This document shows positions 9,441-54,391 of a stretch of DNA of 64,000 bases, piece after piece. The notes below the pieces were generated by a model. That model did not search any database, was not told the DNA's origin, and worked only from the letters and a program-made list of their open reading frames with translations. The stretch spans positions 2,568,930-2,632,929 of the forward strand of contig NC_068994.1 of NCBI RefSeq assembly GCF_001194135.2. Reading direction: 5' to 3'. The stretch comes from Octopus bimaculoides. Its lineage: Eukaryota. The first letter of the stretch is position 1, and every line of letters starts with the position of its first letter. Made by a program: the position numbers and the translations under genes.

Positions 9441-10651
9441 TTTATGCTCTCTGTGCAATGTTTTCGGTCATCTTGTGGGAAATCAAAACTCTAGCAAACT
9501 CACACTCCATGTCTGGACTCTAGGCATAACAGCTGGAAAATGACATGGCCTACTGATATGAAAATTATCATGCATGTGCAGGAATAGGGATGTCACCTTG
9601 CACCCGAAGGATTTTGCTCATGCTGTATTAGTTTTGCTGGAAAGAAATAGAGTCGGGTCATTTTTGACTGCACCTCATATAAGTGATAAAACACATACAC
9701 GTGATCTAAAACTATTAGGAAGAATGAAACCAAACCACTTGAAAATGAAGTCATGGTGTCAACGAGTTATTGGAACTGATTTCTTAACCTCTTTTATTGT
9801 TTAAGGTATTCTGTAGAATATTCCTTTTTGTCTTTTTAAAATCTGAGACAGTGTTCATTCTTGCTTTGTTGCCATTCACTCAAAATATAGCCAAAAATTT
9901 AACCAATAAAATTTTCCTTCCTCAATATTTCCAATATTTCAGTCAGTATGAATTAATTTGAACTCTGCTTCTTCTACTGAAGCTAAGAACTAACCAACTG
10001 TACTCTACTTCCATTTAAACATGCCAGATGCACCCCTTCAGCTTCTCCACATTTACCTGGACTTTCACCTTACTCCATATACCCAAGATCACATGCAGTT
10101 CTTCCTAGAATTGTTATTTAACAGAAAACTCACCCTTTTGAACATGTGATTTGTATTTTGAGGATAGCAAGGAGATTTTTGACAGAGGTTTGACTTGCTA
10201 TATTGGGCATCGTATAAGCTCCCTTGTCCTCCTTCATTGACCTATGCTAATACATAGCACAATGATATGGCTGTCACATTGATTGTTACACGTGGATTAA
10301 ACTCGTGCTAGTCTGTCAACTTTGATTGGTAATTGTGTTACAAATCTGCTTAAACAGAGCTGACCCATCAATATTTAATAACATCAATACAAACCAACAA
10401 AGGAGTCTATGCATGGTTACTCAAACTGCTGGAAATAGCAGGTGAATTCCCTAAATGCACACTCTAATGTCTTAAGAAAAGACACACTGAACAATGCATG
10501 GTTTGACATTGAAAATGATAGACGGTCTTGGTCAAAGCATCTTTGGCCTTAATTCTGTTCAATTAGAGTAAAATCTAGAGCCCAACTCCATTGGAACTGA
10601 CTTAATTCAGTAATCTAACATCTCCACATTAATTGTACCAATCCTATCACC

Positions 10652-10894
10652 TAGCAGCTGTGATAGTATCTATAGCTATTGTGGTTTCTATAACACTGTG
10701 TATTGTGAGATGTAACAATGTGAGAAATAGCTCCTCTGAAAGAACAGCAGAAGAGAAACAGGCATACCAATGTCGCAATGAGATGAGACAGTTGATCTAT
10801 CAAGGTAACAACAGTGTACCTGTGATGTCAGGTAATCGAGGAGAGACATCAGACAGATATGGTCATTCGAGGAGCCATTACTATCCAGAAGACT
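10652..10894 (+). pseudogene. Pcdh: Protocadherin remnant: C-terminal half of TM plus juxtamembrane cytoplasmic region only
   Basis: 10652-10704 is identical to 31724-31776 (53 bp); 10777-10877 matches 31840-31940 with 2 mismatches. No ectodomain upstream and the exon donor is missing. Confidence 0.85.
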
Positions 10895-12706
10895 TAAGTT
10901 ATTTTAATATATTGAAGGAAATTTCTGTCAGATTCATTTACTTTTACACAGAAAGCAAGACAATCATTGATCGACCCCCTGATATATAACTCATCCCCAT
11001 CCCATAAACTTTGTATCAATCTGTCCTCAGTTCTAGGTCTTCACCAATCACCATGAACTCTATTTATTTAAACAGATATATAAATGTTATATTCTTAGAC
11101 AAGTGATGTCAGTGATTCTTCTGGATTCTTAATGAAATACCATTCATGTCAAGTAAACAGAACTACTTTGTAATCTTTTGTTCTTTGGATTGTGGCCATG
11201 CTATAGTACCTCATTCAAGGGTTTTGGCCATGTTAGTCCAAATCATTATTTCTGTCTGGAATTTATTTTATTGAGCTTTATTTATTGAATATGAAATGAA
11301 AATAATGGCTGTAAATATGTCTTGATATAACTAGGATATTCTTTCAATAATCTGGCTGTTAAGGAAATATCCATGGCACTTGGTGGATTACTTCTATCTT
11401 TAAATTATTGTGAAAAAACTAATTAATTTAGAAAATGAATTATTCAGTTGTCTCTTAATTATCTCCCCATCAATCATAGGCATCGTTTAATGACACACAA
11501 TAAAAAAACATCGTTTTCAACTATTGCATTTTGGTAATTTTCCTTCTTTATCAGTTTGCTGATAGTTTAATATTCAAAATAGGATGTGAAATAGTGATAA
11601 AAAGTAATTTTAATGAATAAGAACATTGAGACAGCATGATTTAATATTTTCATGTTGGATTTACATAATTTCCCAGTTATCATTTCTATAACTAAATAAG
11701 ATTTCTTTAACTTTCTCTCACAATGTAACTGATAATAAAAATGGTGAAAAATAACTGAAGCATATGATATATATTATCTGATTATAAAATATAATTTTAA
11801 AAGATTCTGTCAATGAATTTTAAACTGTCCCCTTTGGGTATCTCTGTACATAGAACAGCCTTAGACCCTCCTGTCGTTTCTGTTTCCATTTAGTTTTGGA
11901 AAGTTACATGCTTCGTTTTATATCCATTATTTATCAATGTGTAAAGATAACGGATTCTTCCAGGGTATGTTGTTGTGAGTTAAAGTATTATATCTTAGAA
12001 CGAGAAGAGGAATACTAAATCTTAGAAAGTTAATATGATGAAGTAGCCCATCGACAATCTCCAACCAGAATCCCATTGTTGTTGGCATTATCTGAGTGTT
12101 TCAGAAGATCCATGTGATGGAGGTAAGATAGTTAAACAGTAGTTAATCAACATGTCTAAACATCTTTATTGTTATGCATACTGTCCCAGACTTGAGGAAT
12201 TTGAGAATATACCTGTGGTCCCTTAGAAAACAGTGAGAAGTTTACTTAGGAAAAAATTGGTTCATTTATTGAGCCTTGTTTGTATAATACCTGTTATTCT
12301 ATACACATGTGTAAGAACAAGTAAGTGAATATCAATTTCATGAAAATTAAATTATATCTGCTAATGAAATAATGATCCTAACTAGGACTATCAGTTACCA
12401 ACCTTTCAAATGCATAACTGTTGGAAATTCAGGTAAAATGAAATTTTTGCTATAAAGAAAGAAATTTTGCAAAAAGAAAATCTAATTGACAATAAAATTA
12501 GGTATATATGACTGATAAATTCTAATTATATATTTTACCTGGTGTTACCAAATTTGCTTAACTGTTATATCTATAATGTGTTGCTATCTTTGAGAAGTGT
12601 ACATTTTGGAAAAAAATTGAAAACTGCTCATTTGAAATACTGGTCTGAACTTGTTTTGGTTTATTGTTTGGTGCTGTTGTTGGGTCGTCTCCTTCATCTC
12701 TCACAG

Positions 12707-12939
12707 GGAAACACATCTCAACCAATCTAACTGAAGGTGGAGAAAGTATCATCCATCTCCTCCACACCCACCTTCACATTTACTAAACATCACACATAGA
12801 CAGAATAGTCAGAGAAGAAAGAACTACTGATTCCCAATGACTTATTCACTTCACTAATCCATCAACATGTCACACCACAGCAGCAGTCATATTGGAGTAT
12901 TAATAATACTAGAGAATACTGGGAATTTACACAATAAAG
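12707..12939 (+). other. Putative 5' leader exon of Pcdh gene A
   Basis: Pyrimidine tract + tcacag| upstream, donor aaag|gtgagt. Multiple homologous blocks with 43707-43954, which sits in the same position relative to gene B. Confidence 0.65.
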
Positions 12940-13341
12940 GTGAGTATGTTCCTGCTATTTCTGACACCTAAATCAGACTATCTGAAAATCTAAGAAATAA
13001 AAAAAAAAAAATAAATAAATAAGAAAAATAGCCAGAGAATTAGATTTATTAGTTAGATAGAAAGCTGTAACATTCTGAAGAATTTTGCCAAACATATCTA
13101 GTAGTAAATAATTTTCTCATATTCCTTGGAAAATTTCATATATTCTGCGAAAAATATATTGATAATAAATTAGATTTAGTTTCTGTTGAAGAATTTGTTC
13201 TTTTATCAGGTTAAACAAGTTGGAAGATGTTCTTAATGAAAAAAGCTGTGCTATTGCTGGGACCATATATCTAATATATCAGTAGTACTGCACCAGCAGG
13301 AAAATAACTCTGTTGGATATTTTTAGACATTTTCCTCTTCT

Positions 13342-13423
13342 ATTTCTTGCTTGGAAGGTTTATTGATCAGCTGTAATGTCTCCTTCTAATGCTTAGCCTC
13401 AGGCCTTATACAAGTGAGAAACT
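13342..13423. promoter_or_regulatory. 82-bp conserved non-coding element, copy 1 (regulatory element or structured ncRNA)
   Basis: Identical to 44285-44366; both lie 330-400 nt downstream of the leader-exon donor. Confidence 0.6.
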
Positions 13424-15505
13424 GTACACAAAGAATTGTTTCTTGCGTTAGTTGTTGGCCTTTAATTCCTTGGTGGGGCATGGAGAGCCAGCAATTTTGC
13501 ATAAATAGGGGAAAAAGAAAAACAACATTATCACATTTAAAGTCATTTCTTTATTGTTATTACTCAGCTCAATGACCCTGCTCTGCTGGCCAGACGGTCA
13601 TGTCAGCCTTCTGCATATTCTACCAATAATAACGTGGTTAATGCCCTTAGCAGATCTCTGCTTCTTCCACCTATCACTTCCTCTTTTCACTACCCTCCCT
13701 TCCCCCACCGCACCAACTCCCTTCCCTCACCGACCACTGTTAAGCTGCTTCAATTTACACTCTACAATGGAGATGAGCAGAAATTCACTCCCATACAGCT
13801 TACCTCAATTTATTCTTTGTTATTTCATTTCAATTGAAGCAGGCAGATTTCTTATTCCTATAGAAACATTGCGGATATACCTACACACAGACATGTATAC
13901 ATAAATATGCCTCTTTACGTGTGTGTGTATATGTGCATGTATGTAAAGCCATATTTATGTATGTATGTATATATATGTTTGTGTGTGTTTATATATGTGT
14001 GTGCTTGTACTGAAATAATGCATGCATATAGACACATATACACACATACACAAACATTCACCTATGCACAAACCAACTTATGTTCAAAAATACACATGCA
14101 GAAGTTCCTTCCTACATGAACACACACACACACACAGGAGAGAAAATATACATAACTTTTCAGATCTGTTTATGTAGAATGTATGAATATTTCTTTAACA
14201 CATACGAGAAATAAGTATTGGATATATTGTTTTCATGATGCTTGTATATAGATATACATGTGTAAATGCATACAAACATTCACACCTGCATACAACATAA
14301 GCATATACTCACACACACACACACACACACACAAAGGTTTATGCAATTTTAAGTGGATATTTATGCAAGGACATATACAGAAACATAGCTTTAATATATA
14401 AGAGAGTGTGTGTTATATATCAGTCGTACTTTTTTCTGAAATTATTTTTCTTCCTAAATGCATCCAACCTTCAGATATTCAGTGTATAAAAATAGAACAT
14501 GGTGTTTTACCTCTACCCACCCATGCTCTCTAACTTTAATTTAATTTCTAATTAGCTAGCAGCTTCTTTGTTTTCCACCCTCTTTATTATTTCAATTACA
14601 CATCCTTTTGTTCTGCTCCACAAGGTTGCAGTTGTTCAATGTTTTCAGCTTGACCTACCTGTTAAGTGTTGTGAACAGCAGCAGCTATAGCAGGTACTTT
14701 CCGGAGAACATGCTTTCTTCATCAGTTTCAGGTGAACGGGGGTGGGGAGGGATAAAATAATTCTCGATTCGAACGAACAATCAAATGGAACTGGTCTTGG
14801 GAGGAGAGTCTGAACTAGTTTCTCCAGGGATTGGTTCCTATCACACTAGACAAATGTTTACTTCTCTAACTCAGAATGAAGGTCTTTCCTCTGTGTGTGT
14901 GTGTGTGTGAAGTACAGGTGTTTTGGAAGAATTGAATATCTAGAGATTTTCCCAAAATGATGAGACTGGTGGAGATTTTAACATGTTATTTAATGTGTGT
15001 TAGTTTGGTCCTTTCTAAGTAGTTTGGATGATCTTCAAGAATCATATAATACAGACAACAGCACACGACTGAAAACATTAAGTTATGAGGGTTATATATC
15101 ACTGACAACACGGACTATGGTACTGATAAACAATGATATGGTACTGATAAACAATGATATGGTACTGATAAACAACACTATACGAGTTGCGGTCTGTGGC
15201 TACTATTCAGATCTGTTGATCATTTATCACTGACAACACTGTAGTACAGCCAGTCAACACTATGGTACTGATAGTCAATACTAGGGCACTGAAAGATAAC
15301 ACTATAATACTGATAGACAATACTATAGTACTGACAGATAGCACTATAATATTGACTGACAACATTATAGTACTGATAGACAACACTATAATACTGACAG
15401 ACAGCATTATTGTACTGACAGACAACACTGTAGCATTGACAGACAACACTATAATACTGATAGACAACACTGTAGTACTGACAGACAGCACTACTGACAG
15501 ACAAT

Positions 15506-15841
15506 GAGCGTTAGGCCTCACAGGGGCAAAGTGGCTGAGTTTCTTTTGAGTGTTGGGCCTCATGGAGGTAATTACCAACACATTTTGCATTATGTCGTGC
15601 TTGAGAAGAAGACCCCTCAAGCTGAGCAAAATTGCAGTCATGGCAGATACTGGTGTTATGCAAATGGCACATAAAAGCACTCATTATACTTTTGGAGTGG
15701 TTGGCATTAGGAAGGGCATCCAGCCATAGAAAGCCATGCCAAATCAGACTGGAGTCTGATGCAGTCTTCCAGCTTACTGGCCCCAGTCAAACCATCCAAC
15801 CCAAGCCAGCATGGACAACGGACATTAAATGATGATGATGA
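15506..15841 (+). mobile_element. 5'-truncated RTE-type element with (GAT)n tail and 11-bp TSD
   Basis: TSD tgacagacaat at 15495-15505 and 15842-15852; ends ...ggacattaaatgatgatgatga. Confidence 0.8.
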
Positions 15842-15876: not shown

Positions 15877-16091
15877 CTTTTCTACTCTAGGTACAAGGCC
15901 CAAAATTTTCTGGGGAGGGGACCAGTCGATTAGATCAACCCCAGTACACAACTGGTACTTAATTTATCAACTCCAAAAATGATGAAAGGCAAAGTCAACC
16001 TCGGCAGAATTTGAACTCAGAACATAAAGACAGATGAAATACCGCCAAGTATTTCGCCTGGCATGCTAACATTTCTACCAGCTCGCCGCTT
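15877..16091 (-). mobile_element. tRNA-derived SINE
   Basis: gatgaaaggcaaagtcaacctcggcagaatttgaactcagaac core (B-box-like gttcaaat on the - strand); same family at 21010, 40025, 47200 and 54140. Confidence 0.8.
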
Positions 16092-19000
16092 TACTAACAG
16101 AGAATATTATGGTACTGAAAGACTCTAGTAGTGATATAGATAAAACTATAATACTGACAGACAACACTATGGTACTAGCAGACAAGGCTATAATACTGAA
16201 AACTTTCTCTAACAGGCAAGCACCTAATCTCGTTGTTAAAATGAGTTGAGAGAATGATGAGATTACAATCTAATTTGCAAAGTACCATGTAAACAACTTT
16301 GTTTCTGCATCAAATTGAAGCTCCTTCTCTGTGTCTGAACTAGTTCCATGTGTTCAGATTCAGGGATATATTAAGCAAACAATATTTGACAATATCATTT
16401 GATATGTTGATTCAACAATAATGTCTTACGATTTGGCGTCTGTGGTTACTTTTCAGATCTGTTGATCATTTACATTGCTTCCATTATGTATGAGGCCAAA
16501 AACTCCAAACTAAATCTGTTTGATTCACGATCTTGCAAATATTTAGAACCAAGACATTCATATTCTATAAATGAATTAATAAATTTTAATGATTTATTAA
16601 CATTGGAAGAATTCTAGATGTGATATAATTTAATGTCCTTGCTATAGTATTTACCATCAAGCCATTACTATAAAGCTGGCAACTGGTACAAAACTGTCCA
16701 TTATGGCTTCTCTCAGTTAAGTATAGTTGTCCAAGTTGAAGCAATGAAATGGTATCGTTGGCACCAGCTGCTGGAATTATTGGAAAACAGCCATGTTGAA
16801 TAACTTCAAAATGCTTGAGGGTACCAATGGATTTTCTCTCAAACTTTACCCATACTTTGCTCTCTAGAAGTAATAAATCGGTGATGGAAGCTGGCATTTG
16901 ACATCCACCTTTTACACTAGTTTCTAATATATGAAATAATAATCTAAAAATAGTAAATATGATATAGCATCATTTTCTATGTTCTTATAGCTGACTCTAT
17001 CAATTGGTTATATAACTATTGTTCCTATCTGTTTAGGAGCTATGTCCTAATATATAGTATTATATTAATATCTTGGTCAATCATGTCATACCTCATGAAC
17101 AAGATAAGCTTTGCTTAGTATATAGAAAGAATATTTGCTCTCTTCAAATTATGGATTTTTATTTAATGAATTATTCAGTTAGCCTGAACTTTTGAAATAT
17201 ATGCCTAGATGTTTTGATATGTACAGTGTTGTGACCGTATATAAGGCACAAAATTCTATTTATATTAGTCTGCCTTATTAAATAATGATGTTACCTAATT
17301 TATTATAAACTATAATAGTACATTATTGCATTCAATAGTTTAGGACCACTCTCTATATCAATTCCTATCTAACCCATTGCCATGGCACTTTCAGGAAAGT
17401 AGTACCTTGTCTAAATAGCAGAGTATTAAATTCACCTCCATGAATCTTCTCAGCAATTGTTTATATACATTTCAGAGAAGAAATGTTGATCTTTCCACTT
17501 ACAAATACTAATTTTGTAAAATAACAGTTGAACATTTAATTTTTGTTTGAGTTTCATATCTTTCATTTCTTTAAAATACTCAACATATAATATGGCTTGT
17601 TGTATGAAGAACAACTTGTTAAACACCATTATGCATTTTTATTTAGCCATTTGTGTATCATAATTAATGCAGAGACACTATGAAAGGCAAATTAAGTGTG
17701 GTAGTCATCCCTTATGAATACATTGTGTTTCAAGCCACAAAACTTTGTCAGTAGCAAATGAAAACTGTCCAGTAGTGAAAGTGCTTAGGTATACACTACT
17801 GCTTGATTGGGCTTTGCCAGTAGCTTGAACCCATTACTAGCTACATGTAAAGTCAAAATATGTCACTGCTGATATAGGAAAACAGCAATTGAAAACAATC
17901 ACTGGTGTTGTGATTAGTTGCCTGGCTGAATGAAAATTCATTATATATCACAGGAGCAGTATTAGAATAAAATAGCCATCACTGTTTCTGCATTAAGTAT
18001 GATACACAGATACAATTTTTAATTCAATACTGCTTCTGTTGCATAATAGGATTTTTTAGTTTTATTTATTTTATATCACAATTTATAAACAATAGCATTG
18101 TGGGTGGGGAGGACAGGTTCCCAGTTGGTTGACCATTGGTTTATTGCATTTCCCATGGTGAGAGAATTTCATTCACAAACACTAGTTTATTATCAGTGTT
18201 TACCACTTTTGGTAAAATATATAAACATAAACCATCTGCATCATTTTATATCTGCTTGTCATGAGTTGGATGGGTTGCTATGGTTCAGGTCAGTGCTTAT
18301 CCAAAGTTACTGCCCTTCTAAACAGGCCCGAGGACCACATCTTGCTTGTACTCTCTGTTTTTGACTTGATGCTTTAACTAAATGCTCTTCCTAACATGAA
18401 CCATTTTCCAAGAGTATACTGGGTATATGTTTTTGTGGCACCAGCACTAGAGAAAGTTTACATGTCCGTGACAAGACTATGGTACCTTCTTAAAGCAATG
18501 CTGTCTCCATTCATTTGCTAATCACTTTATAGAATGTTTTCAATGCATTTTATCATGGCACCAGCACTAGTGAAGTTACCTTGTGCCTCACAGGACAACA
18601 GAGTCCTCACTACTTTATGATATCTATGTTAATTCCAGGAAAGGTGAACAAGAGATCGAATAAGAGAGACTGATACCAGGAGAACCAGAGTGAGGGAGTG
18701 GAAGAAGAAAGAGCATGATGGGAAAAACAGAAAGAACAGATTGAGAGGAGAGAGTGATGGCAGCTACATGTTTGCTGGTAAGAGAGAGAGAGAGAGAGAC
18801 GCACACACATACACACACACACACACACACACAGATAGACAGTGGGCAATGGTATGAATATGTGAATAATGAATAACCCGGGAGTAAAGGAATGATGGCA
18901 GGTTGTAGAGAAGGGTGATGGTAAGGTGCATTGGATAGAGACCGATTTGATGCAATTCCTCAACATACAAGAGATAGAATAATAAATGTGGTGGTGGTGA

Positions 19001-19199: not shown

Positions 19200-19720
19200 A
19201 TCTCCACCTCCATTTTCATGTCTGTTTCACCATGCTTGCATAAATGAAGGGTTTTCTCCAGCACTACATGTTCCCAAATATTTCCTTTATGGAGCTCAAT
19301 ATTTTGAGATCAACCTGCATCACATCACCTCGTCTTCCAGGGTTTCCTTCTGCCATAGGTTTTTAGTTACTTTGAGTGCTCAGCTTGATAAAGCTTTCCA
19401 ATTCCCCTTATATTCAAGGTTCTTTCTCAGTCCATTTATTCATGCACATTAACATTACACATTCAGTAAAGCACACCCACTTCATTCCTTTTTAGCTTTC
19501 ATAAACTCTTTCCATTCAATGCCCATGTCTTGTTACTACACAGCATCATGCAATCTGCCCTTCACTCTGAAAGGGAAACCCTTTGCTGTTAGTAAAGGAA
19601 CTAGCTTCCAGAACTTCTTCTTTGCTTTAGATACTTTGGCTACTATACTTTCCAAACAACCACCACCACTACTATTTAGGTCTTCTAGATAACATAAGCT
19701 ATCAACAAGCATTTGAAAGA
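19200..19720 (-). mobile_element. RTE LINE 3' fragment (ORF C-terminus plus 3' UTR)
   Basis: ORF 19536-19733 ..KKFWKLVPLLTAKGFPFRVKGRLHDAV is homologous to GWAKFRELLPLLVRKGLSLRMK at about 56935. Confidence 0.75.
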
Positions 19721-21009
19721 ATTCATTTAACATGTTCTTTTATTACTAACTACATCTACCACATATGAAGCAACATCTCACTTTGTACACAAATGTTATC
19801 CAATCTACCCTTCACTCTGTGAAATATTACTGGAGAGATTGTCCACCTGAATGCTACAATTAAATTTATCATAAGATTTATCAGCTTTATTTTAGAGGAC
19901 CCTCACTTTTAAATAGTTTGCTTTCATTATATTTCTAGGAACTACCATCTTCTATTATGTAGTATAGAGTTAAGAAATGATGATAATAGTGAGAAAAATA
20001 AGTGATGTTATGTAGAATTGAAAGCTGTGACTTTATCCATTAGCAAACCTTTGCTAATGGATAAAATTGAAGAGGAAGAAAATTCACTTATGAGAACTAG
20101 GATCTTTAACTTATAAAAGAATAGCAAACATAGCTTATGTCAAGCCTGACTTCTAAAAAAATTTGGTTCTTTTATGGACTTGAACAGGTATGGTGATGAT
20201 TGTAGAGTGGATTAGTAAATATCATATTGGTGTAAGTTGTATCATGTCAATGGAAAAGGTATAAAAAGAAAAAAAAAAAAGATCTCATATTTTCAATTTT
20301 TTACCATTAGTTTAACATTTAGTGATAGTAGGAGTGAAACAGAGAGCAATGTTGTAGTTGTTCAAGTCCAAATTAGGTAGGATACAAAATGATGATGGAG
20401 AAGTATTACTATCTTTTATTTGATGTGAAAGAGATTCTGTCTTTGCATAATTGTCAGATTTCTTAATATATCAGCAGAAGAATGTTTTAAAGGATAGTAA
20501 AAACAGAGGGGCTACAATATCAGGAGACAACCATTTGAATCTAATTTATTGAGTGTTGCATATGAAGCCAATTGACAGACTGTGTACAAGTTTAGAAACT
20601 TCCTGAATGTTACAGATATTAGTGTACAAAACAATTGATTTGGTATCAATAGATATTGTTAACGGCTAATATTGGGTGCAGAGCAACAACAGCCTTAAGT
20701 GACCATCCAGTGAAGTAACTTACATAACATTTAAATTGTTTTCTCAAGAGTAATGTATTGAGAAATTATTAACTGTCTAGTGACAATGTGAAAAGAAACT
20801 ATTTAGGTACAGTTATCTTCTACACATACAATCTTCAACTGTCAAATATATTTACTTTGAACAATTCACACAACATTTCTATAGTTACAATTGTCACAAG
20901 TTAATAATGTCTTCATCACTAACATTGTCCTCTATTATAAGCATTATTACAGCCTTAATCACCATCATTACTATCTCCATCAACATTATTACATTGATAT
21001 GTTAATAAT

Positions 21010-21241
21010 CCTTTCTGCTATAGGCACAAGGCCTGAAATTGTTTTGTGTGTGTGTGTGTGTAGGGGGGGGGGCAGTCGATTAGATCGACCCCAGTATGCA
21101 ACTGATACTTAATTTATCAACCCTGAAAGGATGAAAGGCAAAGTCGACCTTGGTGGAATTTGAACTCAGAACACAAAGACAGATGAAATACTGCTAAGCA
21201 TTTCGCCTGGCATGCTAACGATTCTGCCAGCTCACCTCCTT
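21010..21241 (-). mobile_element. tRNA-derived SINE with 17-bp TSD
   Basis: TSD attgatatgttaataat at 20993-21009 and 21242-21258; same core as the 15877 copy. Confidence 0.85.
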
Positions 21242-22581
21242 ATTGATATGTTAATAATGTCTTAATTACCATCATCATCACCACCATCAATATTATTAGA
21301 ATCACTAGTTAATGATGTCTTAATCACTGCTATTGCTCCCACCTTTATTGTTGTCATACAATTTCTACTAATTTTTCTCTTTTACTTCCTTTATCAACAT
21401 ATAATAATTATCATCATCATCATCATCATCATCATCATTTGTATTTAGACAGGTGGTGAATTGACAGAGTCATCAGAGTGTAACACAAAATATCTCATAG
21501 TATTTGTTCCAGTTCTCTGCAATCTAAGTTCAAATCTAGCTGATGTCAGTCTTGGCTTTCCTTCTGTCAGCTTGGTGACTTGATAGAATTGTTAGAGTTC
21601 CAGACTCAGATACTTTGTGGAATTTGTTCTGCCTGTTTGCATTCTGTTGCCCAGTTAAACACCACCACCAGCTGGTCCTTGGGGGGGGGCTTTAATGATG
21701 GAGTTCACTCTGTTGCACACATTCAGGTCAGGTCGGTGGCTGGAAGTTGATTTCCCCCCCCCCCTCTGTCTCTCTCCAGTCCCCTGGGCTCTGCAAAAAT
21801 AGGTTCATGAGTGCTGCCATTCATTTCCTGACTAAATGGTAAAAATATCACTCCACCCCATTCCCTGCATCACCTTTTCCTGAGATGGGATTTTGCAGTG
21901 TACTCTCTCTTTCTTTTTTCTTATGCTCAGAATTACTCATTAAAGCTAATGAATTATTTCGCCTCTCTGTTGGGTTTAATTTTAATTAGGCATCTCATTT
22001 GGATCCTTTTATTAAATATATCAACCCGCCTTTAACTATATTATTTACTGCTATCATTTCACGACCATCATCATCATCATCATCATCGTCGTCGTCGTCA
22101 ACACTATGCTGTCAATGCTTTATATCATCAACTGCTCCAATAAAATATATTTGTCTAATTAAGAGTTATCTACCCTTTATCAGTGTTTGTGCAAATTTTA
22201 TCTTTAACTATGAAACGACATTTTGTTTCTACTCTTGAAGAGGCAAACACATCAGATGTGATCAAATATTTTAAGATTAACTCCTCAGTATGTTACTGGT
22301 ATCTAGAGCATTAGCACCACAATAATGAAAAATGATGTTAACTCTATGGAATTGGTTTAAATCTGTCTCTACCTCCTTTGCTACATTACTGTTGATTTTA
22401 ATTCTTTGATTCCTTGGTTTGTGGTCATGCTGGAGCCCCGTCTACATGGGCTTTAGTTAATTATATTGACCCCTACTAGTATTTATTTCAATCTGGCATC
22501 ATTTCTCAATTCACTAAGTTATTCTCTGATATAAAGGGACTCAATACTGTTTGTACTTGCAATCACACACACACACACACA

Positions 22582-22660
<79 letters not shown>

Positions 22661-23989
22661 ATAGATTTCCACACAGCTTCCATTTAAGAAATTTGATTCA
22701 AAATGCATTCTCAGCCTGAGACTACAGTAGAAAAAACTTGCTCAAGGTGTTGCACAGTGAGATTGAACCCAGAAACACCATATGATTGCAAAACTTCTTA
22801 ACCATCTCTGTTATGGCTGCACTTAATGGGAAACATTTACACTTTATCACAGATTTTTAAGTAATATCCATTAACCAATCCTCTCTTACTAATCTACTTA
22901 ATGGTACCTATTTACCCACTTTTTGCCTCTCCCTGATAAATCTTAATGATTAACCTACAGCAATCCCTCCATTATCATTGTTTGTATCCATTTTCTCCAT
23001 AATAGCATGGGTTTGATAATTCTACATATATGAATTACTGCATGGTTTACAGAAGCAAAAACTATTCTATTATTAAGAAAGATTAGTTATATTTGATCAA
23101 TATAAACCTCACACAAGTGACACACTAAAACTCTGAAATTGAGTAAGTACTCATCAATATCCAAACTTCATCTGTAATGTTGATTATCTGAAGATTACAT
23201 AAATATATTTGAGCATTTTCAGTGCTGTAATACTGTGAAGGCGCATGGCTCAGTGGTTAGAGCATTGAGCTTACAATTCTAAAGGCACAGGACCTAACAT
23301 TTGGTGTGAGGGGAGTAGTTGATTACATCGACCCCCAGTGTAATAGGTGGTAGTGTGTATCTATGTGCGAGGTAGAGCAGTTGGCTGAACTAACCAAATC
23401 ATGCATGGCTGGATAACAGTTCTGCCAAAGGGAAATAGTGCTCCTACAGTATCAAAACCCCTCCAGGTCAAATTTAGGAGTCTCATATTTTGCTAACTGT
23501 AGTGGCCCTCATAGAATAAAAGTAAACCCTTAGCAAGACATTGGTCATCCTTTCATATATTCATACCCTTAATGCTGTTGAGAAAGGCATGAATGAGACT
23601 AATTCACAATCTTTCCTATAAATCTGAACTTTATTCTTATGTCAGCCAAATCTTCCCCATAGCACACCTCACCGAAAGAAAGGGCACTTTGAGTAATGCT
23701 TTATTTCTTGCCTGGAAGAAAGAAGTTTACTCAATAAGGGCTAATCTACAGCTAAATTATGACAACAATAATAAAAAATTACATACCTGCCCTTCGAATT
23801 TGTTATTCACAGTTTAGAATCTCTCAGCAACCATGGGAGATAACCAGTGTTTTCCTACCATTTTCATCATGAGAGTTAATTTGGTGGGGAAAAACGTCTT
23901 TTCTTCTCATCAATTATCTTCAAACATCATAGTGTTGCCTGTTGGCTAAAATGTTCATTCTTTTGCAGTAGCTTTGATAGATTGCATCC

Positions 23990-24034
23990 AACAGAGAGAA
24001 ATAGAGAGGGTGAGAAAGAGAAAGAGAGAGAGAG

Positions 24035-24081
<47 letters not shown>

Positions 24082-24236
24082 ACCTGCTTGCACACAAGTG
24101 TCTGTGCTTGTGTGTTTGCACATGTATGTGTGCGCATGTGTATGTGTGCACATACGTATATGTGTGTGTGCACACATGTATATATGAGCATGTGTGTGTT
24201 TATGTGTGTGTGTGCAAGTGTATGTGTGCAAATATG

Positions 24237-24270
<34 letters not shown>
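23990..24270. repeat. (GA)n-(GT)n compound microsatellite
   Basis: Direct reading; source of the HTHT/CVCV ORFs. Confidence 0.95.
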
Positions 24271-24271
<1 letters not shown>

Positions 24272-25192
24272 TTAAAATAAAAAGCTACAGTACATGTCAC
24301 TGGAAAAATATTGTGAATTTCATTATGGAACTTATTTATATTAATATAAAAATATTCTTTCGTTCAGTTCAGTAATAGGAATTTTAATAAATCCATTTTT
24401 TTTTCTCCAGTTATAACTTACATATATAAATGTCAAGTAGAGCAATAGATTCTTTTTCATTTAATCTACTTCTGGTTCATCTTTGTTATATTTTAATTTA
24501 TGGGAATAATATTTCAATTTTTCTCTTCAGTACATTTTTAATATTCCTATTCTGCTATATTTCATGCACATCATTTAAAACTTTTTTAAAAGACATTTGC
24601 TGGCTGCATTTTTAGATTTTATAATACCCTAAGCTCTGGTTATGATCATCATCGTCATTGTCATCACCACCACCACCACCACCACCACCACCTCACTACC
24701 TTCGTAATCACAACAAAAGTTGCATTCTTAACAATATGTTTCTAACTGTAAATACACAAATAATAGTTCAAATTTTATGTATTTGAATGGTCAGGAATCA
24801 GACAGTGCATCGAGATCTCCCACTCTAGGATGCTTTCAGTCTTGTGTGAGTTCATTTGTTGATGTTTGTTGACTCAGTACTTCTCTCAATCAGCATCCTG
24901 ACTATTGCCTACTTTTGATATGCACTCCTCATTCCTTTGCTTAATACCCAACAGATATGTATACGAGTCAAGTGTGGTTGTAGAAAACATGAATCAGTGG
25001 GGGCATGTTCGAGTTCAGTTGGAACAATGATTGGCAGATGCATTCACTTGTTCATTATCTATATCAACACACACACACATTAAATATATACAGATATATT
25101 ATATGTACTAGCAGAAACACCATCCTCCAAGTAGTTTTCTGCTAGTATATATCTTTGTTTGTATAAAACTATTGCATAACTGCCTGTATGTG

Positions 25193-29637: not shown

Positions 29638-31998
29638 ATGGCAAGCAAAAATATGATGTTGATTGTAATATTTCTGCTCTCAGTTCAGGAGTGTATATCA
29701 ATTGACCTTACTTACACTGTCAGAGAAGAAGAAAGTCCTGGCACTTATATTGGAGACATTGCTGCTGATTCCCATTTCTTTGATACTGTCCCATCTAAGG
29801 ATTCACATTTGATAACATTCAGTGAGGTACAACGGAGAAAGACGCAGTTGTTTAATGTGAGTGAAAATGGAGGATTATATACAGCACACAAGTTGGATGC
29901 TGAATCTCTCTGTACTTTTAATAAAGAATGTAGTAGAGTTTCTAAAGTTGCTATTCGGAAGGGGAAATCTTTTTTGAAGATCCTTAAAGTGAAAATAATT
30001 ATTGAAGACATTAACGACCATCAGCCAAACTTCCCTAACTCTCATGTTAGTATCCAGTTTTCAGAACGAGATAGCAAAGGATCACAGCTAACTATCCCCA
30101 ATGCTATTGATAAAGACATATTCTCCCAAAATCACATGATCAATTATCATTTAAAAAAAATTGATGGTGAACCATTTTCATTGTCTGTTACTAAAAGAGT
30201 TGATGGCATATCCTCCTTAAAGATTATTTTAGAAACAAAATTAGATCGAGAAGTAAAAGATACATATAATATTGAAGTTGTAGCAAAAGATGGTGGTTCC
30301 CCACCAAAGCAGAGCAGCTTAAATGTAGAAATTACAGTTAAAGATGAAAATGATAATCAGCCAGTCTTCTCACAGAATGTTTATAATATATCTATAGAAA
30401 GTACACATGAATTAGACAGACCAGTGTTGAAGTTATCTGCTAATGATCTAGATATTGGCAATAATGGTATTGTTTCTTATGATTTTAGTCCTATGAACTC
30501 AAATAATATGAAAACTAAATTTCGTTTGAATCAACGGACTGGGGAAATTTTTTTAACCAAACAGACTCATGTTGAGGAAAAGAATAATTTTGAGTTGTAC
30601 ATCGAAGCCAGAGATGGAGGCAGCCCTCCTCTCAGTTCCATAGCCACCATTCAGATAAAAGTTATCAATCATCACAATAATCCTCCAAATATTGATATAG
30701 ACTTTGTCTCAGCTATCAACGACAACACAGCAACCATTTTCGAAGATATCAAAGTTGGTAGTTTCATTGCTTATGTGATGGTCACTGACAATGATGTTGG
30801 ACACAATGGAGAGGTGAACTGTCATATCAAAGACGACACATTCAAACTACAGTCAATGGGATCAAAGGAATATAAAATAGTTCTAAAGAAAGCAGTAGAC
30901 AGAGAGACAGAGGAACATTATCACTTTACTGTGTCGTGTGAAGATAAAGGATTACCTGCTCTGAAAACTGATAAAGATCTGTCAATCCAAGTGTTAGATG
31001 TGAATGATGTAGAACCACACTTTACGAAAGACACATTCAAGTTCCTTACCTACGAGAATGACAAAGCTAATTTCCCTATTGGCTTTATCAATGCTACAGA
31101 CCCAGATATTGGTAAGGGAGGTGAATTGTCTTATTCTCTGAGAAATAAACAGCAATATCGTCTGCCATTCCAGATTATCAACTCTGGCTTTATTTCAACA
31201 AACCAGTCTTTAGACAGAGAACACAGAGATTTCTATGAGTTTGAGGTTTTTGTGAAAGACAATGGAACACCATCTCTGAACAACACAGTGAATGTTGAAG
31301 TGGAAGTATTGGATAGAAATGATAATGCTCCATATTTTACATTTCCTAGTGTTGATCCTTTCACTCTTGATGTCCACTATCATCCGCAAAGTAAGAACGA
31401 CATCACAGTTCTGAAAGCGTCTGATATAGACAGTCACATGAATGCTTTTCTCAAGTATGAAATCGTTTCAGGTAACGAGAGACAGTTATTTAAGCTGGAT
31501 TCATTCACTGGTGTGTTATCTTACTCTCGCACAGTTTACCAAAATGATGCCGGATCATATGAGCTTGAGTTTGTTGTGAAAGACAGTGGTACTCCAGTTC
31601 TGTCAGCAACAACTAGCATCTCTTTGACACTGACTGTTAGTAATAAGACATCACCAATGTTTACAGCTGTCCACCTACCAAGTGATAACACCATAGATGC
31701 CACATTGTTGATTATCATTGTAGTAGCAGCTGTGATAGTATCTATAGCTATTGTGGTTTCTATAACACTGTGTATTATTCGAGGTAATGTGAGACATGGC
31801 TCATCTAGAACAGAAAATAAACAGGCATATCAATGTCAGAATGAGATGAGACAGTTGATCTATCAAGGTAACAACAGTGTATCTGTGATGTCAGGTAATC
31901 GAGGAGAGACGTCAGACAGATATGGTCATTCGAGGAGCCAATATTATCCTGAAGACTGGAATACTCCAACTGTTCCAAGACTGCCAAAGTCATTAAAG
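29638..31998 (+). CDS. Pcdh: Protocadherin gene A, large exon (signal peptide, EC1-EC6, TM, juxtamembrane tail; 787 codons)
   Basis: Cadherin motifs (DINDHQPNF, LDRE, DENDNQPVF, DVNDVEPHF, DRNDNAPYF), EC1 Cys-X5-Cys (CTFNKEC), TM LLIIIVVAAVIVSIAIVVSITLCII. Acceptor ttgcag| at 29597; donor AAG|gtaagt at 31999, phase 0. The ORF track runs on into the intron to 32034. Confidence 0.95.
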
Positions 31999-32456
31999 GT
32001 AAGTTTCCTTTGTTCCAAGTATTTTAATTCATAATAGGGTTTGGGGGATTTTAACAATAGTGTCAATTCAATTTTACCTGTCACAATTATTCAAAACAAA
32101 TGATGCAAAAAATAAGAGGCCCTAAACTTACACAAGAACAATACGAAATGCTAGAAAAAATATTCGAATTTTTGCTGGCTATGTCTGTATATAAAGTAAA
32201 GAATATGACCCCAAGATGAAAATTACTTTTTGGTTAAAAACTTTGTAGGTTATGCTTCTCATGGAGTCACCCTATTTTCCTCTAATGAATTTGTAGTGTA
32301 TTCCTTTAAGTCATGTACTAATCTTTTATCATGACTCTAGCTTACGCCCCTAATTATATTTCTCTAATAGTCTTAACCAACTTTTATGAATTTATTACAA
32401 ATACATGTTTTCTGTACTGTATCAGTTATTATTACGACTCACATTCCACACTCCAG

Positions 32457-33440: not shown

Positions 33441-34169
33441 CCTAAGGCATTTGAATCATCAGGGATCTGCATAGCAACTGCTAAAAGAAAAGCTTGTGAA
33501 TCCTATCTTAGCAATCCTATGTGTGCTGTCTGTGGCAACTACTTCCTTGCCAGAACAGACATTTTTGTCCACAGCAAGACACATAAACAAGCAATCTTCT
33601 TCTGTCTTTCTTTGTTTCTTTCCCTCAGGGTCAGTGTTGGGAGGCAGTTGCTATGTCATCATGACTGTGATTTTGACAAACAAGCTATCATTACCATCAT
33701 GTGCACGTATGTGTGTGTGCATGCGTCTGTGTGTGTGTGTATGGGTGTATGTATATGTTTGTTAGTGTGCTTTTTACCCCCACTCTCCACCCAGGACCTT
33801 TTAAGATTTAAAGAGAAAATCTGTTTTCTTTATCATCATCATCATCATCAGTACCATCGTCATATTTACCACATTCAATCATAACCATACCATTCTACAC
33901 CATCCTCATCACCACCATCATTTCAACCACCACCATTATCACAGTTGGGTGATTTGAGGAAGATTCTACTGCTGTTTCTAACAGGCCAAACTACTACATA
34001 GAGGCTCCCTGTAAATCAGAATACGTGATCTGATCAATAAGTATCTGTTGCCATAGTGATGAAGCTAAAGCACGCAGAGTGAAGCTGCTTGGCACAGATT
34101 GAGCTTGAACTTTACTGTGCATATGCACTAAGTTTTAACACTCTAGCTCACTTCCACTGTTTACAGCAG

Positions 34170-39290: not shown

Positions 39291-40024
39291 GATAAGGTAG
39301 ACATGGACTCTGTGTCTGAAAAAAAAAAATGAGATGGTCTCGGCTTTGATCATAGGACTGCTCAATCAAGCCTTACCTTGGGTTAAACAACAACTGCAAC
39401 CCATTCAAATCAAGCTATACAACATTCAACCCCATAAAATAACTTTTCTTGGTTATGATGATTTTTTACTAAATACATTTCTTATGGCTGTTTATGTAAG
39501 AAATATGGCATTTGTGATTTCACACTTTTAGAATTAAAGATCTCCTCATGCCTGTCCATTACTTGAACTCTAGTGCTGCTAGACTAGTTATTTCAATAAA
39601 ATTTTAATGAGCTATTAATTCTAATTTTATTTAATCCAGTATTCATGTCTTTTGGGTTACCAAATAATTGAGGTTGTGTTGTAGTTTTTGTTTAACAACT
39701 GTCTCACAACCAGATGTTGTTGTTACTTCCATTGTTATGAAACTCCTTTTGGGTAATCTTCTTACTCCTTATGACATCTTACTTTTTCGTCATTAACATC
39801 CATGCCAGCAGAGATTTTTTCCCAATAATATCTTGATTTCTTGACATATTGTCTTTAACAACCCCCACCCTGTTCACCTCTTTCATCAGATTACTTTTCC
39901 TTTTTAAATTAATAATTCTAACATCTAACTTTTCTCTTGACTTTTAGATAAAACTTTCATTCATTGATAGTCTTCCAAACCTTTCAAGTTTCCGTTTTAA
40001 TAAACCAAATATATTGATTTGTTG

Positions 40025-40225
40025 TACAGGCCTAAAACAACACATTTTATAGGAGGCTTTTGTTGATTAAACTAAACCCCAATACTTCCCTGGTATTTTA
40101 TTTTATCAAACCTGGAAAGATAAAAGGCAAAGTTGACCTCAGTAGGATTTGAACTCAGAAAACAGAGGGTTACAACTAATTAACAGAAAGCATATGGCCT
40201 TGCAGTTTAATGATTTCTACCAGTT
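40025..40225 (-). mobile_element. tRNA-derived SINE (degenerate)
   Basis: aaaggcaaagttgacctcagtaggatttgaactcagaa core. Confidence 0.65.
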
Positions 40226-41256
40226 AGTAAAGTCTAATAACAATGTTGTCAGTATTTGAAGAATAATTTTGTGATGGTTTATAAAATATCAGCTAAAATA
40301 AAATTTCGAAAATTCAAAATTCTAAATGTGGAAAGAAAAAGAAAAATCATCTGAAAATTAGTATAAAATCATTTATTAAACTCAAAACCTAGAAACATTA
40401 TATACAGAGCATCAGTATTAAACAATGGCTCTAAATGACTTGGTTATGAAATCAGTTGTGTATTAAGTATTCATTTTTTTCCTGCAAAATAAGATTAAAT
40501 ATGCAAAATGGATTGAATCTTTTAACATTATTCTCTGCAAAACATTCTATCTTTGATTAATTATACTGTCTTTGTAGTAGTCCTAATATATCTTGATATT
40601 ATTTAGTATTCAACATGGCTTGCTATTATTTAACATTCTTGATTGGTCAAAGAATTTTGTTTTCAGTATCATTATCATCATAAAAAAGAGTGGAGAAGAA
40701 TCTCATTTCCATATATGGAGTCTGTTTGTTTTTCTTAAGAAACACTATTAGATCGTTAATGGCTTTCATGCAATGGCAGACAGGATCAAAGACAGTTTCT
40801 TTTCAACTACAATAGGCTGTGATCACCTGCAGAGAATAAAGTATATACCTGATGTATAACTAAAATTAGAAGTCAGTGTGATTTTACTCTTGTCATAAGG
40901 TAGATAGATGCTTATCAAATCACTCGGTTTGTTCTAGCTATGCCATGACACCTAACTATTAACATTCTGACAATAATGTTTTCTATGGTTTGCTTCTTGT
41001 AATCATTGTTTGGATACATACAGAGATGCAGTTCTTATATTGAAAAGCAATGCTGCATAAATCACTGAGAATTTTGCTCAGATGAATCTAAAATTGTATT
41101 CACACTTACCCTCATTCTTTCTTTTTTTTCTTCAGACATTCACTACTAACTTTAAATACATTTCTAGATACACCAGAGAGGGATAACACTATAAACCAAT
41201 TATGTGTAAATACATATAGCTGAACAGTTTACACATACATACTGTATGTATGTGTT

Positions 41257-41335
<79 letters not shown>

Positions 41336-41397
41336 AGGTATTCTGTGTGTTAAAATAGGTATGATTTCTACTTTGTTTTCTTAAATTGGCTAATATT

Positions 41398-42180
41398 ATC
41401 TCTCTCCCCAGCAGTGCTCCACCAGCTTAACCATTTGCTCCTCTAGTAAGAGTCTACCACCATAACATCTCCTTGCCATTAGTACTCCACTGTATTAAGC
41501 TCTTTCCTCCAGCATGAGTCCACCATCTTAAACTCTACCTTCCAACAATAGTTCACTATGTTACCCTCTCTTTCAGTAAGGGTCCACAACCTTATTTTCT
41601 ATCCGAAAACATTTGGCCATCCCTTTAATTTCCCTCCCCAATAGAAGTCCAACATTGATGTCTTCCTCCTCACAGTAGTGATCCACCAACTTCTCTCTGC
41701 CCAGTATTTATCTATCACATTAAACACTCTCCTTCAGTAATGGTCCATTATCATAACCTTTCTCCTTTAGTTGTAATCCATCACATTCATTTATTCCCAG
41801 AACCAGTCCACTACCTTAATCTCTCTCTCTCTCTCTCTCCCTCTCTCTTGCTCATTCTTTCAATAGTCCTCTACTTGTTCCCTTAGCAAAATCCATCACC
41901 TTAACATCTCTCCCCTACCAGTGCTCCACCAGTGATAGTCTACCTTTATTTCTCTCTTTCAGCATTAGTCCATCACTTTACTCCCTCTCCTCCAGCAGCC
42001 CACCACTTTAACCTTTCTCCCTCTCAAGAATGATCCGGCCCATATTTCTTCACCACTTTAACTTCTCTCTCTGCCAAAGGTGGTCCACTTTGTCTCTCCT
42101 CCAGCAGTAGTCCACCATTTTGGTCTCTATCCTACAATAATGGCCCATGTCTTTAATAACTCTTTCTTAGTAGTGGTTCA
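41398..42180. repeat. Degenerate pyrimidine-rich minisatellite (about 32-bp unit ctctcc.ccagcagt.gtccaccac.ttaac)
   Basis: About 20 diverged units visible by eye. Confidence 0.7.
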
Positions 42181-42315
42181 GTACAAATTCTCAGCCATGA
42201 TGAAAGCTATCTGAATGAAACACAAGCCAGATTGCATTTTCAGTCAGCAATATTTACATAATCTCTGCACAAAATTACTTTCAAGTTTTCTAAAGATTGT
42301 TGTGTTTAACCACAG

Positions 42316-42466
42316 AAGTACAGTGAACCGGTTGAAGTAACATCTTATGGTGAACTCCGGGAACTAGAAAATTACAAGAGCGACACTCTAGTAACCTACA
42401 AGGACACTGGCCGAAGTTGGATAGATAGAGATATTGGATATTATGAAGAAATACCAGCAATGTCAG
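42316..42466 (+). CDS. Pcdh: Protocadherin gene A, penultimate exon (KYSEPVEVTSYGELRELENYKSDTLVTYKDTGRSWIDRDIGYYEEIPAMS)
   Basis: cacag| acceptor; only the phase-0 frame is open, matching the 31998 donor; donor CAG|gtagtg, phase 1; homologous to 1487-1637. Confidence 0.8.
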
Positions 42467-42637
42467 GTAGTGTAATTCTACTTGTCTCTGTTCCTGTTGT
42501 TGTAGTTGATATTCTTACCTTGCATTGCCTGTATTTTGTATAGAAAGAAAACTGGGTTTTAATTTTGGTTTTTTTCTCCTCTTGTTTCTATTTACCATCT
42601 ACAGCATCTTGAATCATCTTACTTGTATATTTTCCAG

Positions 42638-42756
42638 ATCTCTATAGTGCCTGTCCTGCTATATCAACCAGCTACGAGAGACAACATTACCAAGATAGAT
42701 TTCTTAAACCCCTAGAAAGACAGCTGTCCCTGACACCTGAAGATATCATTAACTGA
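42638..42756 (+). CDS. Pcdh: Protocadherin gene A, terminal exon ((D)LYSACPAISTSYERQHYQDRFLKPLERQLSLTPEDIIN*)
   Basis: tttccag| acceptor, phase 1 matching the preceding donor; TGA 42754-42756; homologous to 1756-1850. Confidence 0.8.
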
Positions 42757-43050
42757 CCCAAGGCAATTTCTATCATATCTTACAATCTCAATCATCAAAG
42801 TTATTTAGAAATAGAATATACTCTGTATACCTTAAGAGGAAAGAAAAAGAGACCAGATTTTTCATTACTTAAAGTTTCATTAAAAATGTTTTCATTCATG
42901 TAGTATTATTTTTTTTAAATGCATAGTTCTTACACATTTGAAAAGTATAAATTAAATATATGCATATAGAACCAAAAGTGTGATATTTCTGATAATACTA
43001 ATTTTCCCTATTAAACTGCTGCTGCTATATTACAAATGATTACAATACAA

Positions 43051-43056
43051 AATAAA
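43051..43056 (+). terminator. Candidate polyadenylation signal (AATAAA) of gene A
   Basis: First AATAAA noticed after the stop; others follow (about 43324, 43441); AT-rich context, so weak. Confidence 0.3.
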
Positions 43057-43706
43057 ACTTATAAATGCTTTTTATTTGGATACCTAGTCATATTATTAAT
43101 CATAAAGTTTAAACAGTCTTTATTTTCTCCTCATTCATGTTTGTCTATTCACTCTAAACTTACCAACTGGTTATTTTTTTTCAGTCAAGGTTTGATATTT
43201 GATATTTTGTTTCCCTCAAAGATATAGAAATGCAAACATTATCACTAAATTATTATTTTTAAAAACACTGCTCTTTGGTCCTTTAAATATATTAGAATTT
43301 GTTTTTATAAAACTGCAATTGAAAATAAAATCATGTATAAAATAACATTATACATAGTTAAGGGAGATGATAGTTTATTGTAAATGTTGAGTAAATAAAA
43401 AAAATTCATTTGCTATTTATGTGACGATTTCAATTACTCAATAAAATTGGTCATGTGATCAACTATCATGTAGAAAAAGTTTAATTTTGTATATAAAACA
43501 AAAGAAAAAGAAAAATAGAAATAAATCTAGAGAACAATAGATATTTCTACTTTAGTTTGTTGTTTTTGTATTTTTAGACATGTTGGTATTGGATAAATTT
43601 CTTATGGCTAACTGTTAGTGGAACTGATAATTCTGTGTTCTCTCTCACTCTTACTCTCTCACTCATTCTCTCTCACTCATTCTCTCTTTCTCTCTCTTTC
43701 TGTGAG

Positions 43707-43954
43707 GGGAACATATCAACTAGTTTATCAGATGCTGGTTTAAGCATCACCCATCTCTATCACCACACACTCACTAAACATTTCACAGAGAACACAGAGA
43801 GGAACTGCTGGCTTATACTGACTTACTCACCACATCAATCTATCAACATGAAGCCATTGTCACACCATAGCAGCAGTGACACAGACAACCATTAACAAAC
43901 AGAACATTGGGACCAAGTCACAGTTTATACAACAAAGGATTTTATGCTGTAAAA
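43707..43954 (+). other. Putative 5' leader exon of Pcdh gene B
   Basis: Long (CT)-rich tract + tgag|, donor aaaa|gtaagt. Blocks homologous to 12707-12939 include catcacccatctc, cactaaacat, tgacttactcac, tcaacatg, tgtcacaccatagcagcagt and tttatacaacaaagg. Confidence 0.65.
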
Positions 43955-44284
43955 GTAAGTATATCTTTACTTTATTGTTTTCATTTACTTTATTGGATAA
44001 ATATATTTAAATTGTATCAAAACAAAACAAAACAAAACAAATTTAAATACTTTTTTTCTTTAAAATATCACCAAATAGCAAAATAAATAGTTATTTATTT
44101 ACCTGTTTATTTCAAGAGATGAAAACTAAATTCTCTCTAACTACCTATTTTTATTTATTTTTTAAAATATATTTTAAGCTGTGTATTTTAGCCTTATATA
44201 CAATTCATAATATAAATAAGGAGAGAAATATCTTGACTGTATAAGATGTTTGTTGTTGTTGTTGTTTTGTTTTGTTTTTCTTCA

Positions 44285-46901: not shown

Positions 46902-46959
<58 letters not shown>

Positions 46960-49337: not shown

Positions 49338-49371
<34 letters not shown>

Positions 49372-54340: not shown

Positions 54341-54391
<51 letters not shown>

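Follow-up and report, generated by a model that had tools for sequence, protein, structure and literature searches.

A short conserved non-coding element in the first introns of two adjacent octopus protocadherin genes

Introduction

Why should two neighbouring octopus protocadherin genes carry the same 82 nucleotides in their first introns, without a single difference between the copies? Octopus has roughly 170 protocadherin genes in tandem which, unlike those of vertebrates, share no constant exons (PMC9068888). The two copies considered here lie in a stretch of 64,000 nucleotides of Octopus bimaculoides chromosome 14, which bears the protocadherin array (hereafter, the window). An earlier note on this DNA had described them as a hairpin-forming element found in the leader intron of each protocadherin, and had proposed either a control element shared gene by gene, likened to the CTCF-bound promoter elements of vertebrate clusters, or an intronic structured RNA. 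We evaluated these readings on 456 kb of protocadherin cluster, made up of the window and ten further loci (O. vulgaris, O. sinensis, O. bimaculoides and Argonauta hians), by scanning with one profile HMM built for the element and another for the leader exon. Broadly, what emerges is a real conserved non-coding element, narrower in its distribution and more ordinary than first proposed.

Organization of the two genes

Two open reading frames of the window (29638-32034 and 50713-53181) hold big exons that are 100% identical to the O. bimaculoides proteins XP_014767711 and XP_052828885, the products of what we call gene 1 and gene 2. Both genes and the features described within them are on the + strand. 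Gene 1 comprises a leader (5' non-coding) exon at 12693-12939 (nhmmer leader profile E = 8e-58; donor AAAG|GTGAGT at 12940), an intron 1 of at least 16.7 kb (longer in O. vulgaris), a large coding exon at 29638-31998 with its acceptor ~40 nt 5' of the ATG, and two 3' coding exons at 42313-42466 and 42639-42756 (stop codon included), the coding exons being placed by tblastn of the O. vulgaris orthologue P0001 and the 3' pair also by the sequence itself. Gene 2 begins ~1 kb past the gene 1 stop codon, after several AATAAA signals, with a leader exon at 43691-43954 (donor AAAA|GTAAGT at 43955), followed by a large coding exon at 50713-53091 (open reading frame and match to XP_052828885). For both leaders the 5' end given is the limit of homology, which for leader 1, diverged along with its promoter, is distinct from a mapped transcription start; the 3' half of leader exon 2 is ~90% identical to the leaders of P0003-like paralogues. 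No 3' exon of gene 2 occurs in the window past 53091, because those of the O. sinensis orthologue lie ~80 kb beyond its big exon (locus L008, CM016872.1:59978036-60080952, in which the CDS range of this orthologue covers 83 kb).

Strong acceptors stand 40-55 nt 5' of the ATG at both big exons. The model of O. vulgaris P0029, a paralogue, begins with ATGAAG in a homologous leader, and its donor (ATGAAG|GTAAGT) is spliced straight to the big-exon acceptor. Since this model joins a leader donor to a big-exon acceptor, the leader exons of the window can be considered genuine 5' exons. RefSeq holds two transcripts encoding the same gene 1 protein, in O. bimaculoides and O. sinensis alike, and untranslated-region variants therefore exist.

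Upstream of leader 1, only protocadherin debris from dead genes was found (10609-10893 and 1487-1847), one piece being a TM/cytoplasmic fragment that matches O. sinensis P0003/P0004 at 97.5% identity over 81 aa and contains a stop and a deletion, and the second a pair of 3' exons carrying in-frame stops. Elsewhere in the sample, some deposited models (L003:10001-24688 and 19455-24688) link a big exon to 3' exons past one or two other big exons, as does the P0029 model (L005, big exon 12698-15108, 3' exons 24996-25154 and 34039-34164), and all of them bypass nearer, almost identical 3' exons. These long-range joins are worth attention because cephalopods are said to have no shared constant exons, and are probably an annotation artefact of the near-identical 3' exons.

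An exact duplicate within unalignable introns

Copy 1 of the element (13342-13423; nhmmer E = 8e-33) lies in intron 1 of gene 1, and copy 2 (44285-44366) in intron 1 of gene 2. The two match at 100% over all 82 nt and in the same orientation, where no such match is expected by chance (100 shuffles), and are found 402 and 330 nt from their respective leader donors. Blastn extends the similarity to a paralogous block of 108 nt (13336-13443, 94% identical to 44279-44382), outside of which the flanks resemble each other no better than shuffled sequence, so that the edges of the block are sharp and set within introns otherwise unalignable between both genes. Stop codons in all six frames (read from the sequence) identify the 82-mer as non-coding, and both copies include CAGCTG and CAA|GTGAGA and are trailed by ACACAA. 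The descriptive part of the earlier note is therefore borne out, from the 82-bp identity and the distances of ~400 and ~330 nt after the leader donors to the diverged flanks and leader exons (the leaders being homologous but diverged) and the pairings and small motifs that it listed, all of which are found in the sequence.

Distribution across the cluster and species

Throughout the 456 kb, the element was detected at five places only, i.e., the two in the window and three orthologues of copy 2, the copy whose syntenic site is covered by the loci from the other species. O. vulgaris (L001:40531-40612) and O. sinensis (L008:1835-1916) have the 82-mer unchanged. In Argonauta the syntenic copy (L002:26840-26918), ~70% identical and with one indel, is placed ~460 nt past the homologous leader and ~1 kb past the gene 1 orthologue, and reaches a Smith-Waterman score of 66 against a shuffle maximum of 42. 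The profile HMM scan found no element in 16 other homologous leader introns (three in O. sinensis, five in O. vulgaris and eight in Argonauta). Nor did Smith-Waterman alignment reveal any diverged copy, as it returned nothing but noise both after the three O. sinensis leaders and across the 10 kb that follow Argonauta P0024, the last upstream gene found. Overall, 2 of 18 paralogous leader positions carry the element, and the statement that each protocadherin has one, which holds for both genes of the window, is thus false for the array: matches do not track protocadherin leaders in this sample, but are restricted to this gene pair.

The same scan bears on the idea that a dispersed repeat or MITE has left a fragment of itself, by chance, in both introns. 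Octopus genomes are repeat-rich, and the ends of the 82-mer are imperfect inverted repeats (ATTTCTTGCTTG / CAAGTGAGAAAC, 10/12 as DNA), both of which would suit such an origin. However, no further copies were found on either strand in the 456 kb from four species, and thus none of the scatter by which a repeat would be recognized in this sample; in addition, copy 2 keeps its syntenic place in Argonauta, neither copy shows a target-site duplication, and both have a similar offset from homologous leaders. We consider a repeat origin very improbable.

Regarding repeats in general, the window includes a dispersed element of ~170 nt, possibly SINE-like, in 4-5 copies of 70-86% identity (15913-16092, 21063-21241, 47241-47406, 54166-54346, also ~40062-40164). 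When 9000-30000 is compared with 40000-51000, this ~170-nt repeat is the only similarity besides the 82-mer block and a 54-nt coding-exon match. Intron 1 of gene 1 also holds a tandem array of a 21-nt unit (ACTATAGTACTGACAGACAAC-like) at 15093-15514 and 16124-16213.

A promoter and leader block as the one-per-gene sequence

The conserved sequence that does occur once per gene is not the 82-mer but a block formed by promoter and leader, kept at every gene of the sub-array and in Argonauta (homologous sites in L001, L002, L003 and L005-L009), and with about 80-90% identity between paralogues that share only 65% at the protein level. Its promoter-proximal part (43563-43650, AGACATGTT..GGTATTGGATAAATTTCTTATGGCTAACTGTTAGTGGAACTGAT), which covers the 60-90 nt directly 5' of each leader, and the 3' half of the leader (43784-43954) are both kept in paralogues and in Argonauta; leader 1 (12693-12939) is a degenerate version of this block. 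A 15-codon upstream ORF within the leader (43848-43895, ATGAAGCCATTGTCACACCATAGCAGCAGTGAC...TAA) is conserved in most paralogues and in Argonauta, with its start codon deleted in leader 1, and some paralogues have a second ATG at the leader's very end (ATGAAG|GTAAGT) that is annotated as the CDS start.

Vertebrate clustered protocadherins have a comparable one-per-gene sequence, the CSE, located upstream of every variable exon and including a CTCF site. The likening of the 82-mer to such a CTCF-bound promoter element did not hold up. When the window was scanned for a CTCF consensus (CCASYAGRKGGCR, up to 2 mismatches), matches occurred at chance rate and none lay within 1 kb of either copy. With no CTCF core motif and only 2 of the 18 paralogous positions occupied against 16 without the element, a CSE-like promoter element belonging to each gene was rejected.

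Constraint on copy 2

As a neutral yardstick between O. bimaculoides and O. vulgaris, we used the 4-fold sites of gene 1, at which the two species differ by 8.2%; in aligned non-coding blocks, 6-16% of columns differ (mostly ~7.5%). Copy 2 is included in an island of 291 nt (44272-44562) with a single difference between these species in pairwise alignments, at 44401, where ~24 would be expected. This island is made of two adjoining invariant runs (44272-44400, with 0 differences in 129 nt, and 44402-44562), and is the longest nearly invariant non-coding stretch in ~21 kb of alignment between the two species. For comparison, leader exon 2 has nine differences in ~260 nt. The 82-mer of copy 2 is identical in all three Octopus species, O. 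bimaculoides, O. vulgaris and O. sinensis. Given this deficit of differences and the unchanged 82-mer in O. sinensis, copy 2 and ~200 nt downstream are judged to be under purifying selection in Octopus.

At greater distance, the identity of copy 2 to Argonauta (70%) equals that of 4-fold sites in the neighbouring exon, and the case for deep constraint is therefore one of indel-free alignability, not of slow substitution: the element and the ~60 nt before it can be aligned to Argonauta, whereas the neighbouring small 3' intron and what follows the element are unalignable. Conservation within the Argonauta copy is blocky (ATTT.TTGCTT, GTTTATT.ATC, TTAGCC and CCTTATACAA.T.AGAAA), a pattern which would fit protein-binding sites. 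Four small motifs seen in Octopus have disappeared from this species, namely the CAGCTG E-box, the ACACAA “H box”, the AG of the acceptor and the GT of the donor. These comparisons lend substance to the earlier suggestion of a functional shared non-coding element as far as copy 2 is concerned, invariant in three Octopus species and syntenic in Argonauta, but not to the part that made it a per-gene feature, absent as it is from 16 other leaders.

Inside the island, a 35-codon ORF (44394-44501) was dismissed as a chance occurrence, since it is absent from copy 1 and is hit by the sole interspecies substitution. O. bimaculoides and O. vulgaris also show little or no difference in other non-coding stretches, namely 40566-40883 in a gene 1 intron, 43511-43650 in promoter 2, 45559-45759 in intron 1 of gene 2 and 50417-50562 upstream of the gene 2 acceptor.

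Gene conversion and the identity of the copies

Mosaic structure is seen in the coding exons of this gene pair. A tract of ~540 nt in the gene 1 exon (31160-31700) matches 52228-52770 in gene 2, and in a codon-aligned sliding window its identity is 84-99%, third positions included, vs. ~60% in the rest of the exon (third positions taken separately, 77-97% vs. ~40%). A second mosaic tract pairs 30620-30800 with 51690-51870, and the mosaics reach other paralogues, as seen for P0029, whose second half is 92% identical to the gene 1 open reading frame and whose first half is 55% identical. Gene conversion between the neighbours is evident from this coding-exon pattern, and conversion or homogenisation has been proposed for cephalopod protocadherins (PMC9068888; PMC6339937). 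Likewise, the intronic block has sharp edges and an identity far above that of its flanks, in a gene pair that has undergone conversion elsewhere. As these two genes hold the ~540-nt coding tract, gene conversion combined with purifying selection plausibly accounts for the identity of both copies, and a sharp-edged conversion tract of ~100 nt would thus explain the 100% match without extreme constraint on copy 1.

Would conversion suffice by itself? The 82-mer might simply be a tract of ~90-110 nt copied between introns, in which case its identity would be uninformative on function, at least for copy 1. Such a neutral patch would account for the abrupt fall from 100% to unalignable sequence, and is in keeping with the conversion mosaics in the exons of this pair and more widely in the array, with the 16 sister leaders that have no element, and with an Argonauta identity no higher than at 4-fold sites. 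If conversion took place near the O. bimaculoides/O. vulgaris split, we estimate from 4-fold sites that 82 neutral nt would remain unchanged with a probability of ~0.1. However, copy 2 and the following 200 nt do not vary among three Octopus species, where ~24 differences would be expected, which argues that the source of the conversion was itself constrained, and the syntenic Argonauta copy implies that the element is old. A functionless patch is possible for copy 1 and contradicted for copy 2, and we regard it as quite unlikely. The earlier note had set a conversion tract in these two paralogues only against its own proposal. Conversion is indeed seen in the exons, but orthologues carry copy 2, and the element is therefore not merely a recent neutral tract.

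RNA structure readings

The 82-mer folds on the + strand into an 11-bp terminal stem with two G-U pairs and a large unpaired interior (MFE -19 kcal/mol, z -1.06, equalled by 29 of 200 shuffles), and its - strand has a z of +0.26. The fold is thus at chance level, and the label of hairpin-forming had to be dropped. For the Argonauta homologue the fold is weaker still (MFE -7.3 kcal/mol, z +0.80), and the terminal stem is not formed. Across a five-sequence alignment in which one sequence, that of Argonauta, is diverged, 1 of the 24 predicted pairs is compensated, 5 are changed on one side and 7 are broken, a result equalled by 173 of 500 shuffles. An Rfam search over 12000-15000 (E <= 10) gave no match on the element; the matches in this interval were low-complexity miRNA look-alikes only, in TG/CA repeats at 13.9-14.3 kb. 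Similarly, six k-mers of the element are not in the 10 supplementary files of an octopus miRNA study (PMC9699675).

That the 82-mer encodes an intronic structured small RNA (pre-miRNA, mirtron or snoRNA) or an ADAR substrate, as the earlier note had suggested, would agree with its intronic place and discrete boundaries, with the terminal stem and its two G-U pairs, and with the many lineage-specific miRNAs known from octopods (PMC9699675). Yet these readings are unsupported by the weak folds, the Rfam search, the miRNA supplements and the loss of the H box in Argonauta, and we regard them as very unlikely. Specifically, a pre-miRNA or mirtron was rejected because neither strand, nor the Argonauta homologue, yields a stable continuous hairpin (z -1.06, +0.26 and +0.80), and the unpaired interior is unlike that of a pre-miRNA. 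An H/ACA snoRNA was rejected as well: there is one weak hairpin only, the ACACAA, which falls beyond the conserved block, is missing from Argonauta, Rfam returned no match, and neither C/D nor H/ACA architecture is seen.

A candidate cassette exon

The sharp edges of the shared block could also be those of an alternative 5'UTR cassette exon of 57 nt (13358-13414 and 44301-44357). The 82-mer would then consist of a polypyrimidine tract with its AG, the exon and a GTGAGA donor, and the 200 nt downstream in gene 2 would serve as intronic splicing control. Both copies have the corresponding succession of a pyrimidine-rich run, GGAAG|G and, 57 nt on, CAA|GTGAGA. Alternative exons are usually flanked by conserved intron, and O. 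bimaculoides agrees with O. vulgaris throughout 44367-44562 (44401 aside); the two RefSeq transcripts of gene 1, with their one protein, also leave room for a variable 5' untranslated region. The splice sites present in Octopus are lost in Argonauta, however, which has neither the AG (GCTTAAAATG) nor the GT (CAAATAAGAAA) and yet retains the sequence, and on this basis a cassette exon with splice sites conserved in relatives was rejected. In addition, the acceptor is weak (A at -3, GG breaking the pyrimidine tract, no clear branch point), the sole paralogous gene model available joins the leader directly to the big exon, and no near-identical transcript fragments turned up in Logan or ENA when the first 160 aa of each protein were used as queries. 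A cassette exon is, in our view, unlikely.

A possible cis-regulatory role

The interpretation that we favour, to which we would give a probability of about 0.45, and hence somewhat less than even odds, is that the 82-mer forms the core of a short conserved non-coding element situated in intron 1, ~0.3-0.4 kb past the leader, of two adjacent protocadherin paralogues. The element would act at the DNA level and represent the oldest portion of an intronic cis-regulatory module close to the promoter (i.e., a cluster of transcription-factor sites) that may span ~290 bp in gene 2. Such a module would give the two neighbouring genes a regulatory input in common, missing from the rest of the array, and its copies would be kept identical by ectopic gene conversion between both genes and by purifying selection. 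This interpretation is favoured because the copies are sharp and exact, copy 2 is invariant in Octopus, its Argonauta homologue is syntenic and conserved in blocks, 7 of 24 predicted RNA pairs are broken in that species, and stop codons occur in all six frames. It is weakened by the failure to match any transcription-factor motif to the element, its E-box not being conserved and a CTCF-like site being absent, and edges as sharp as those of the block would be more usual for a conversion tract or a processed unit (exon, small RNA) than for an enhancer. What the sequences show is the duplication itself, its confinement to one gene pair, the constraint on copy 2, conversion between the two genes and a want of support for a structured RNA; the regulatory function and the DNA-level mechanism are what we infer. 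Nothing matching the element is described in the literature searched.

It is tempting to go further and to speculate that the 82-mer is an octopod-specific control element coupling the expression or promoter choice of these two adjacent protocadherins, its identity being actively preserved by conversion. This could proceed through an intronic enhancer or silencer, or through an Octopus-specific regulated 5'UTR micro-exon. We see such coupling as rather improbable but, if true, the element would be a first handle on single-gene selection within the cephalopod protocadherin array. Under the more modest reading of a cis-regulatory module, an intronic element limited to two neighbours still represents a small testable piece of octopus protocadherin regulation, for which the promoter and leader block may be a more useful entry point.

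Comparison with known systems

Like the vertebrate CSE, the octopus element is a short conserved non-coding sequence at the 5' end of protocadherin transcription units. It differs in being intronic, in occupying 2 of 18 positions and in having no CTCF-like motif, and the octopus counterpart of the CSE, in the sense of a sequence present at each gene, is the promoter and leader block.

In the manner of conserved alternative 5'UTR cassette exons, the octopus element has 57 nt framed by a pyrimidine tract, an AG and a GTGAG donor, as well as a conserved downstream intron. Unlike in such exons, its splice sites are not kept in Argonauta.

Duplicated conserved non-coding elements (dCNEs), retained beside paralogous genes, have been described in vertebrates. 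The octopus element resembles them as a short block at equivalent spots beside two paralogues, conserved across species amid unalignable non-coding DNA; it is non-coding, and copy 2 is conserved above the neutral level between Octopus species. Unlike vertebrate dCNEs, the octopus copies are 100% identical and reside in tandem neighbours that exchange sequence. Because tandem paralogues exchange sequence by conversion, the identity of the 82-mer is not in itself evidence of extreme constraint. More generally, perfect identity between paralogues in conversion-prone tandem arrays should be treated with caution, as weak evidence of extreme constraint, the comparison of orthologues being decisive.

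Finally, gene-conversion tracts of vertebrate protocadherin clusters (Noonan et al., 2004, as cited in PMC6339937) provide a close parallel, with a sharp patch of near-identity between tandem paralogues that are far more diverged elsewhere, and in the octopus pair a second tract is found in the coding exons. The octopus 82-mer tract departs from these in being intronic, only ~100 nt long and coincident with a block invariant between species, and this coincidence suggests that selection was involved alongside conversion.
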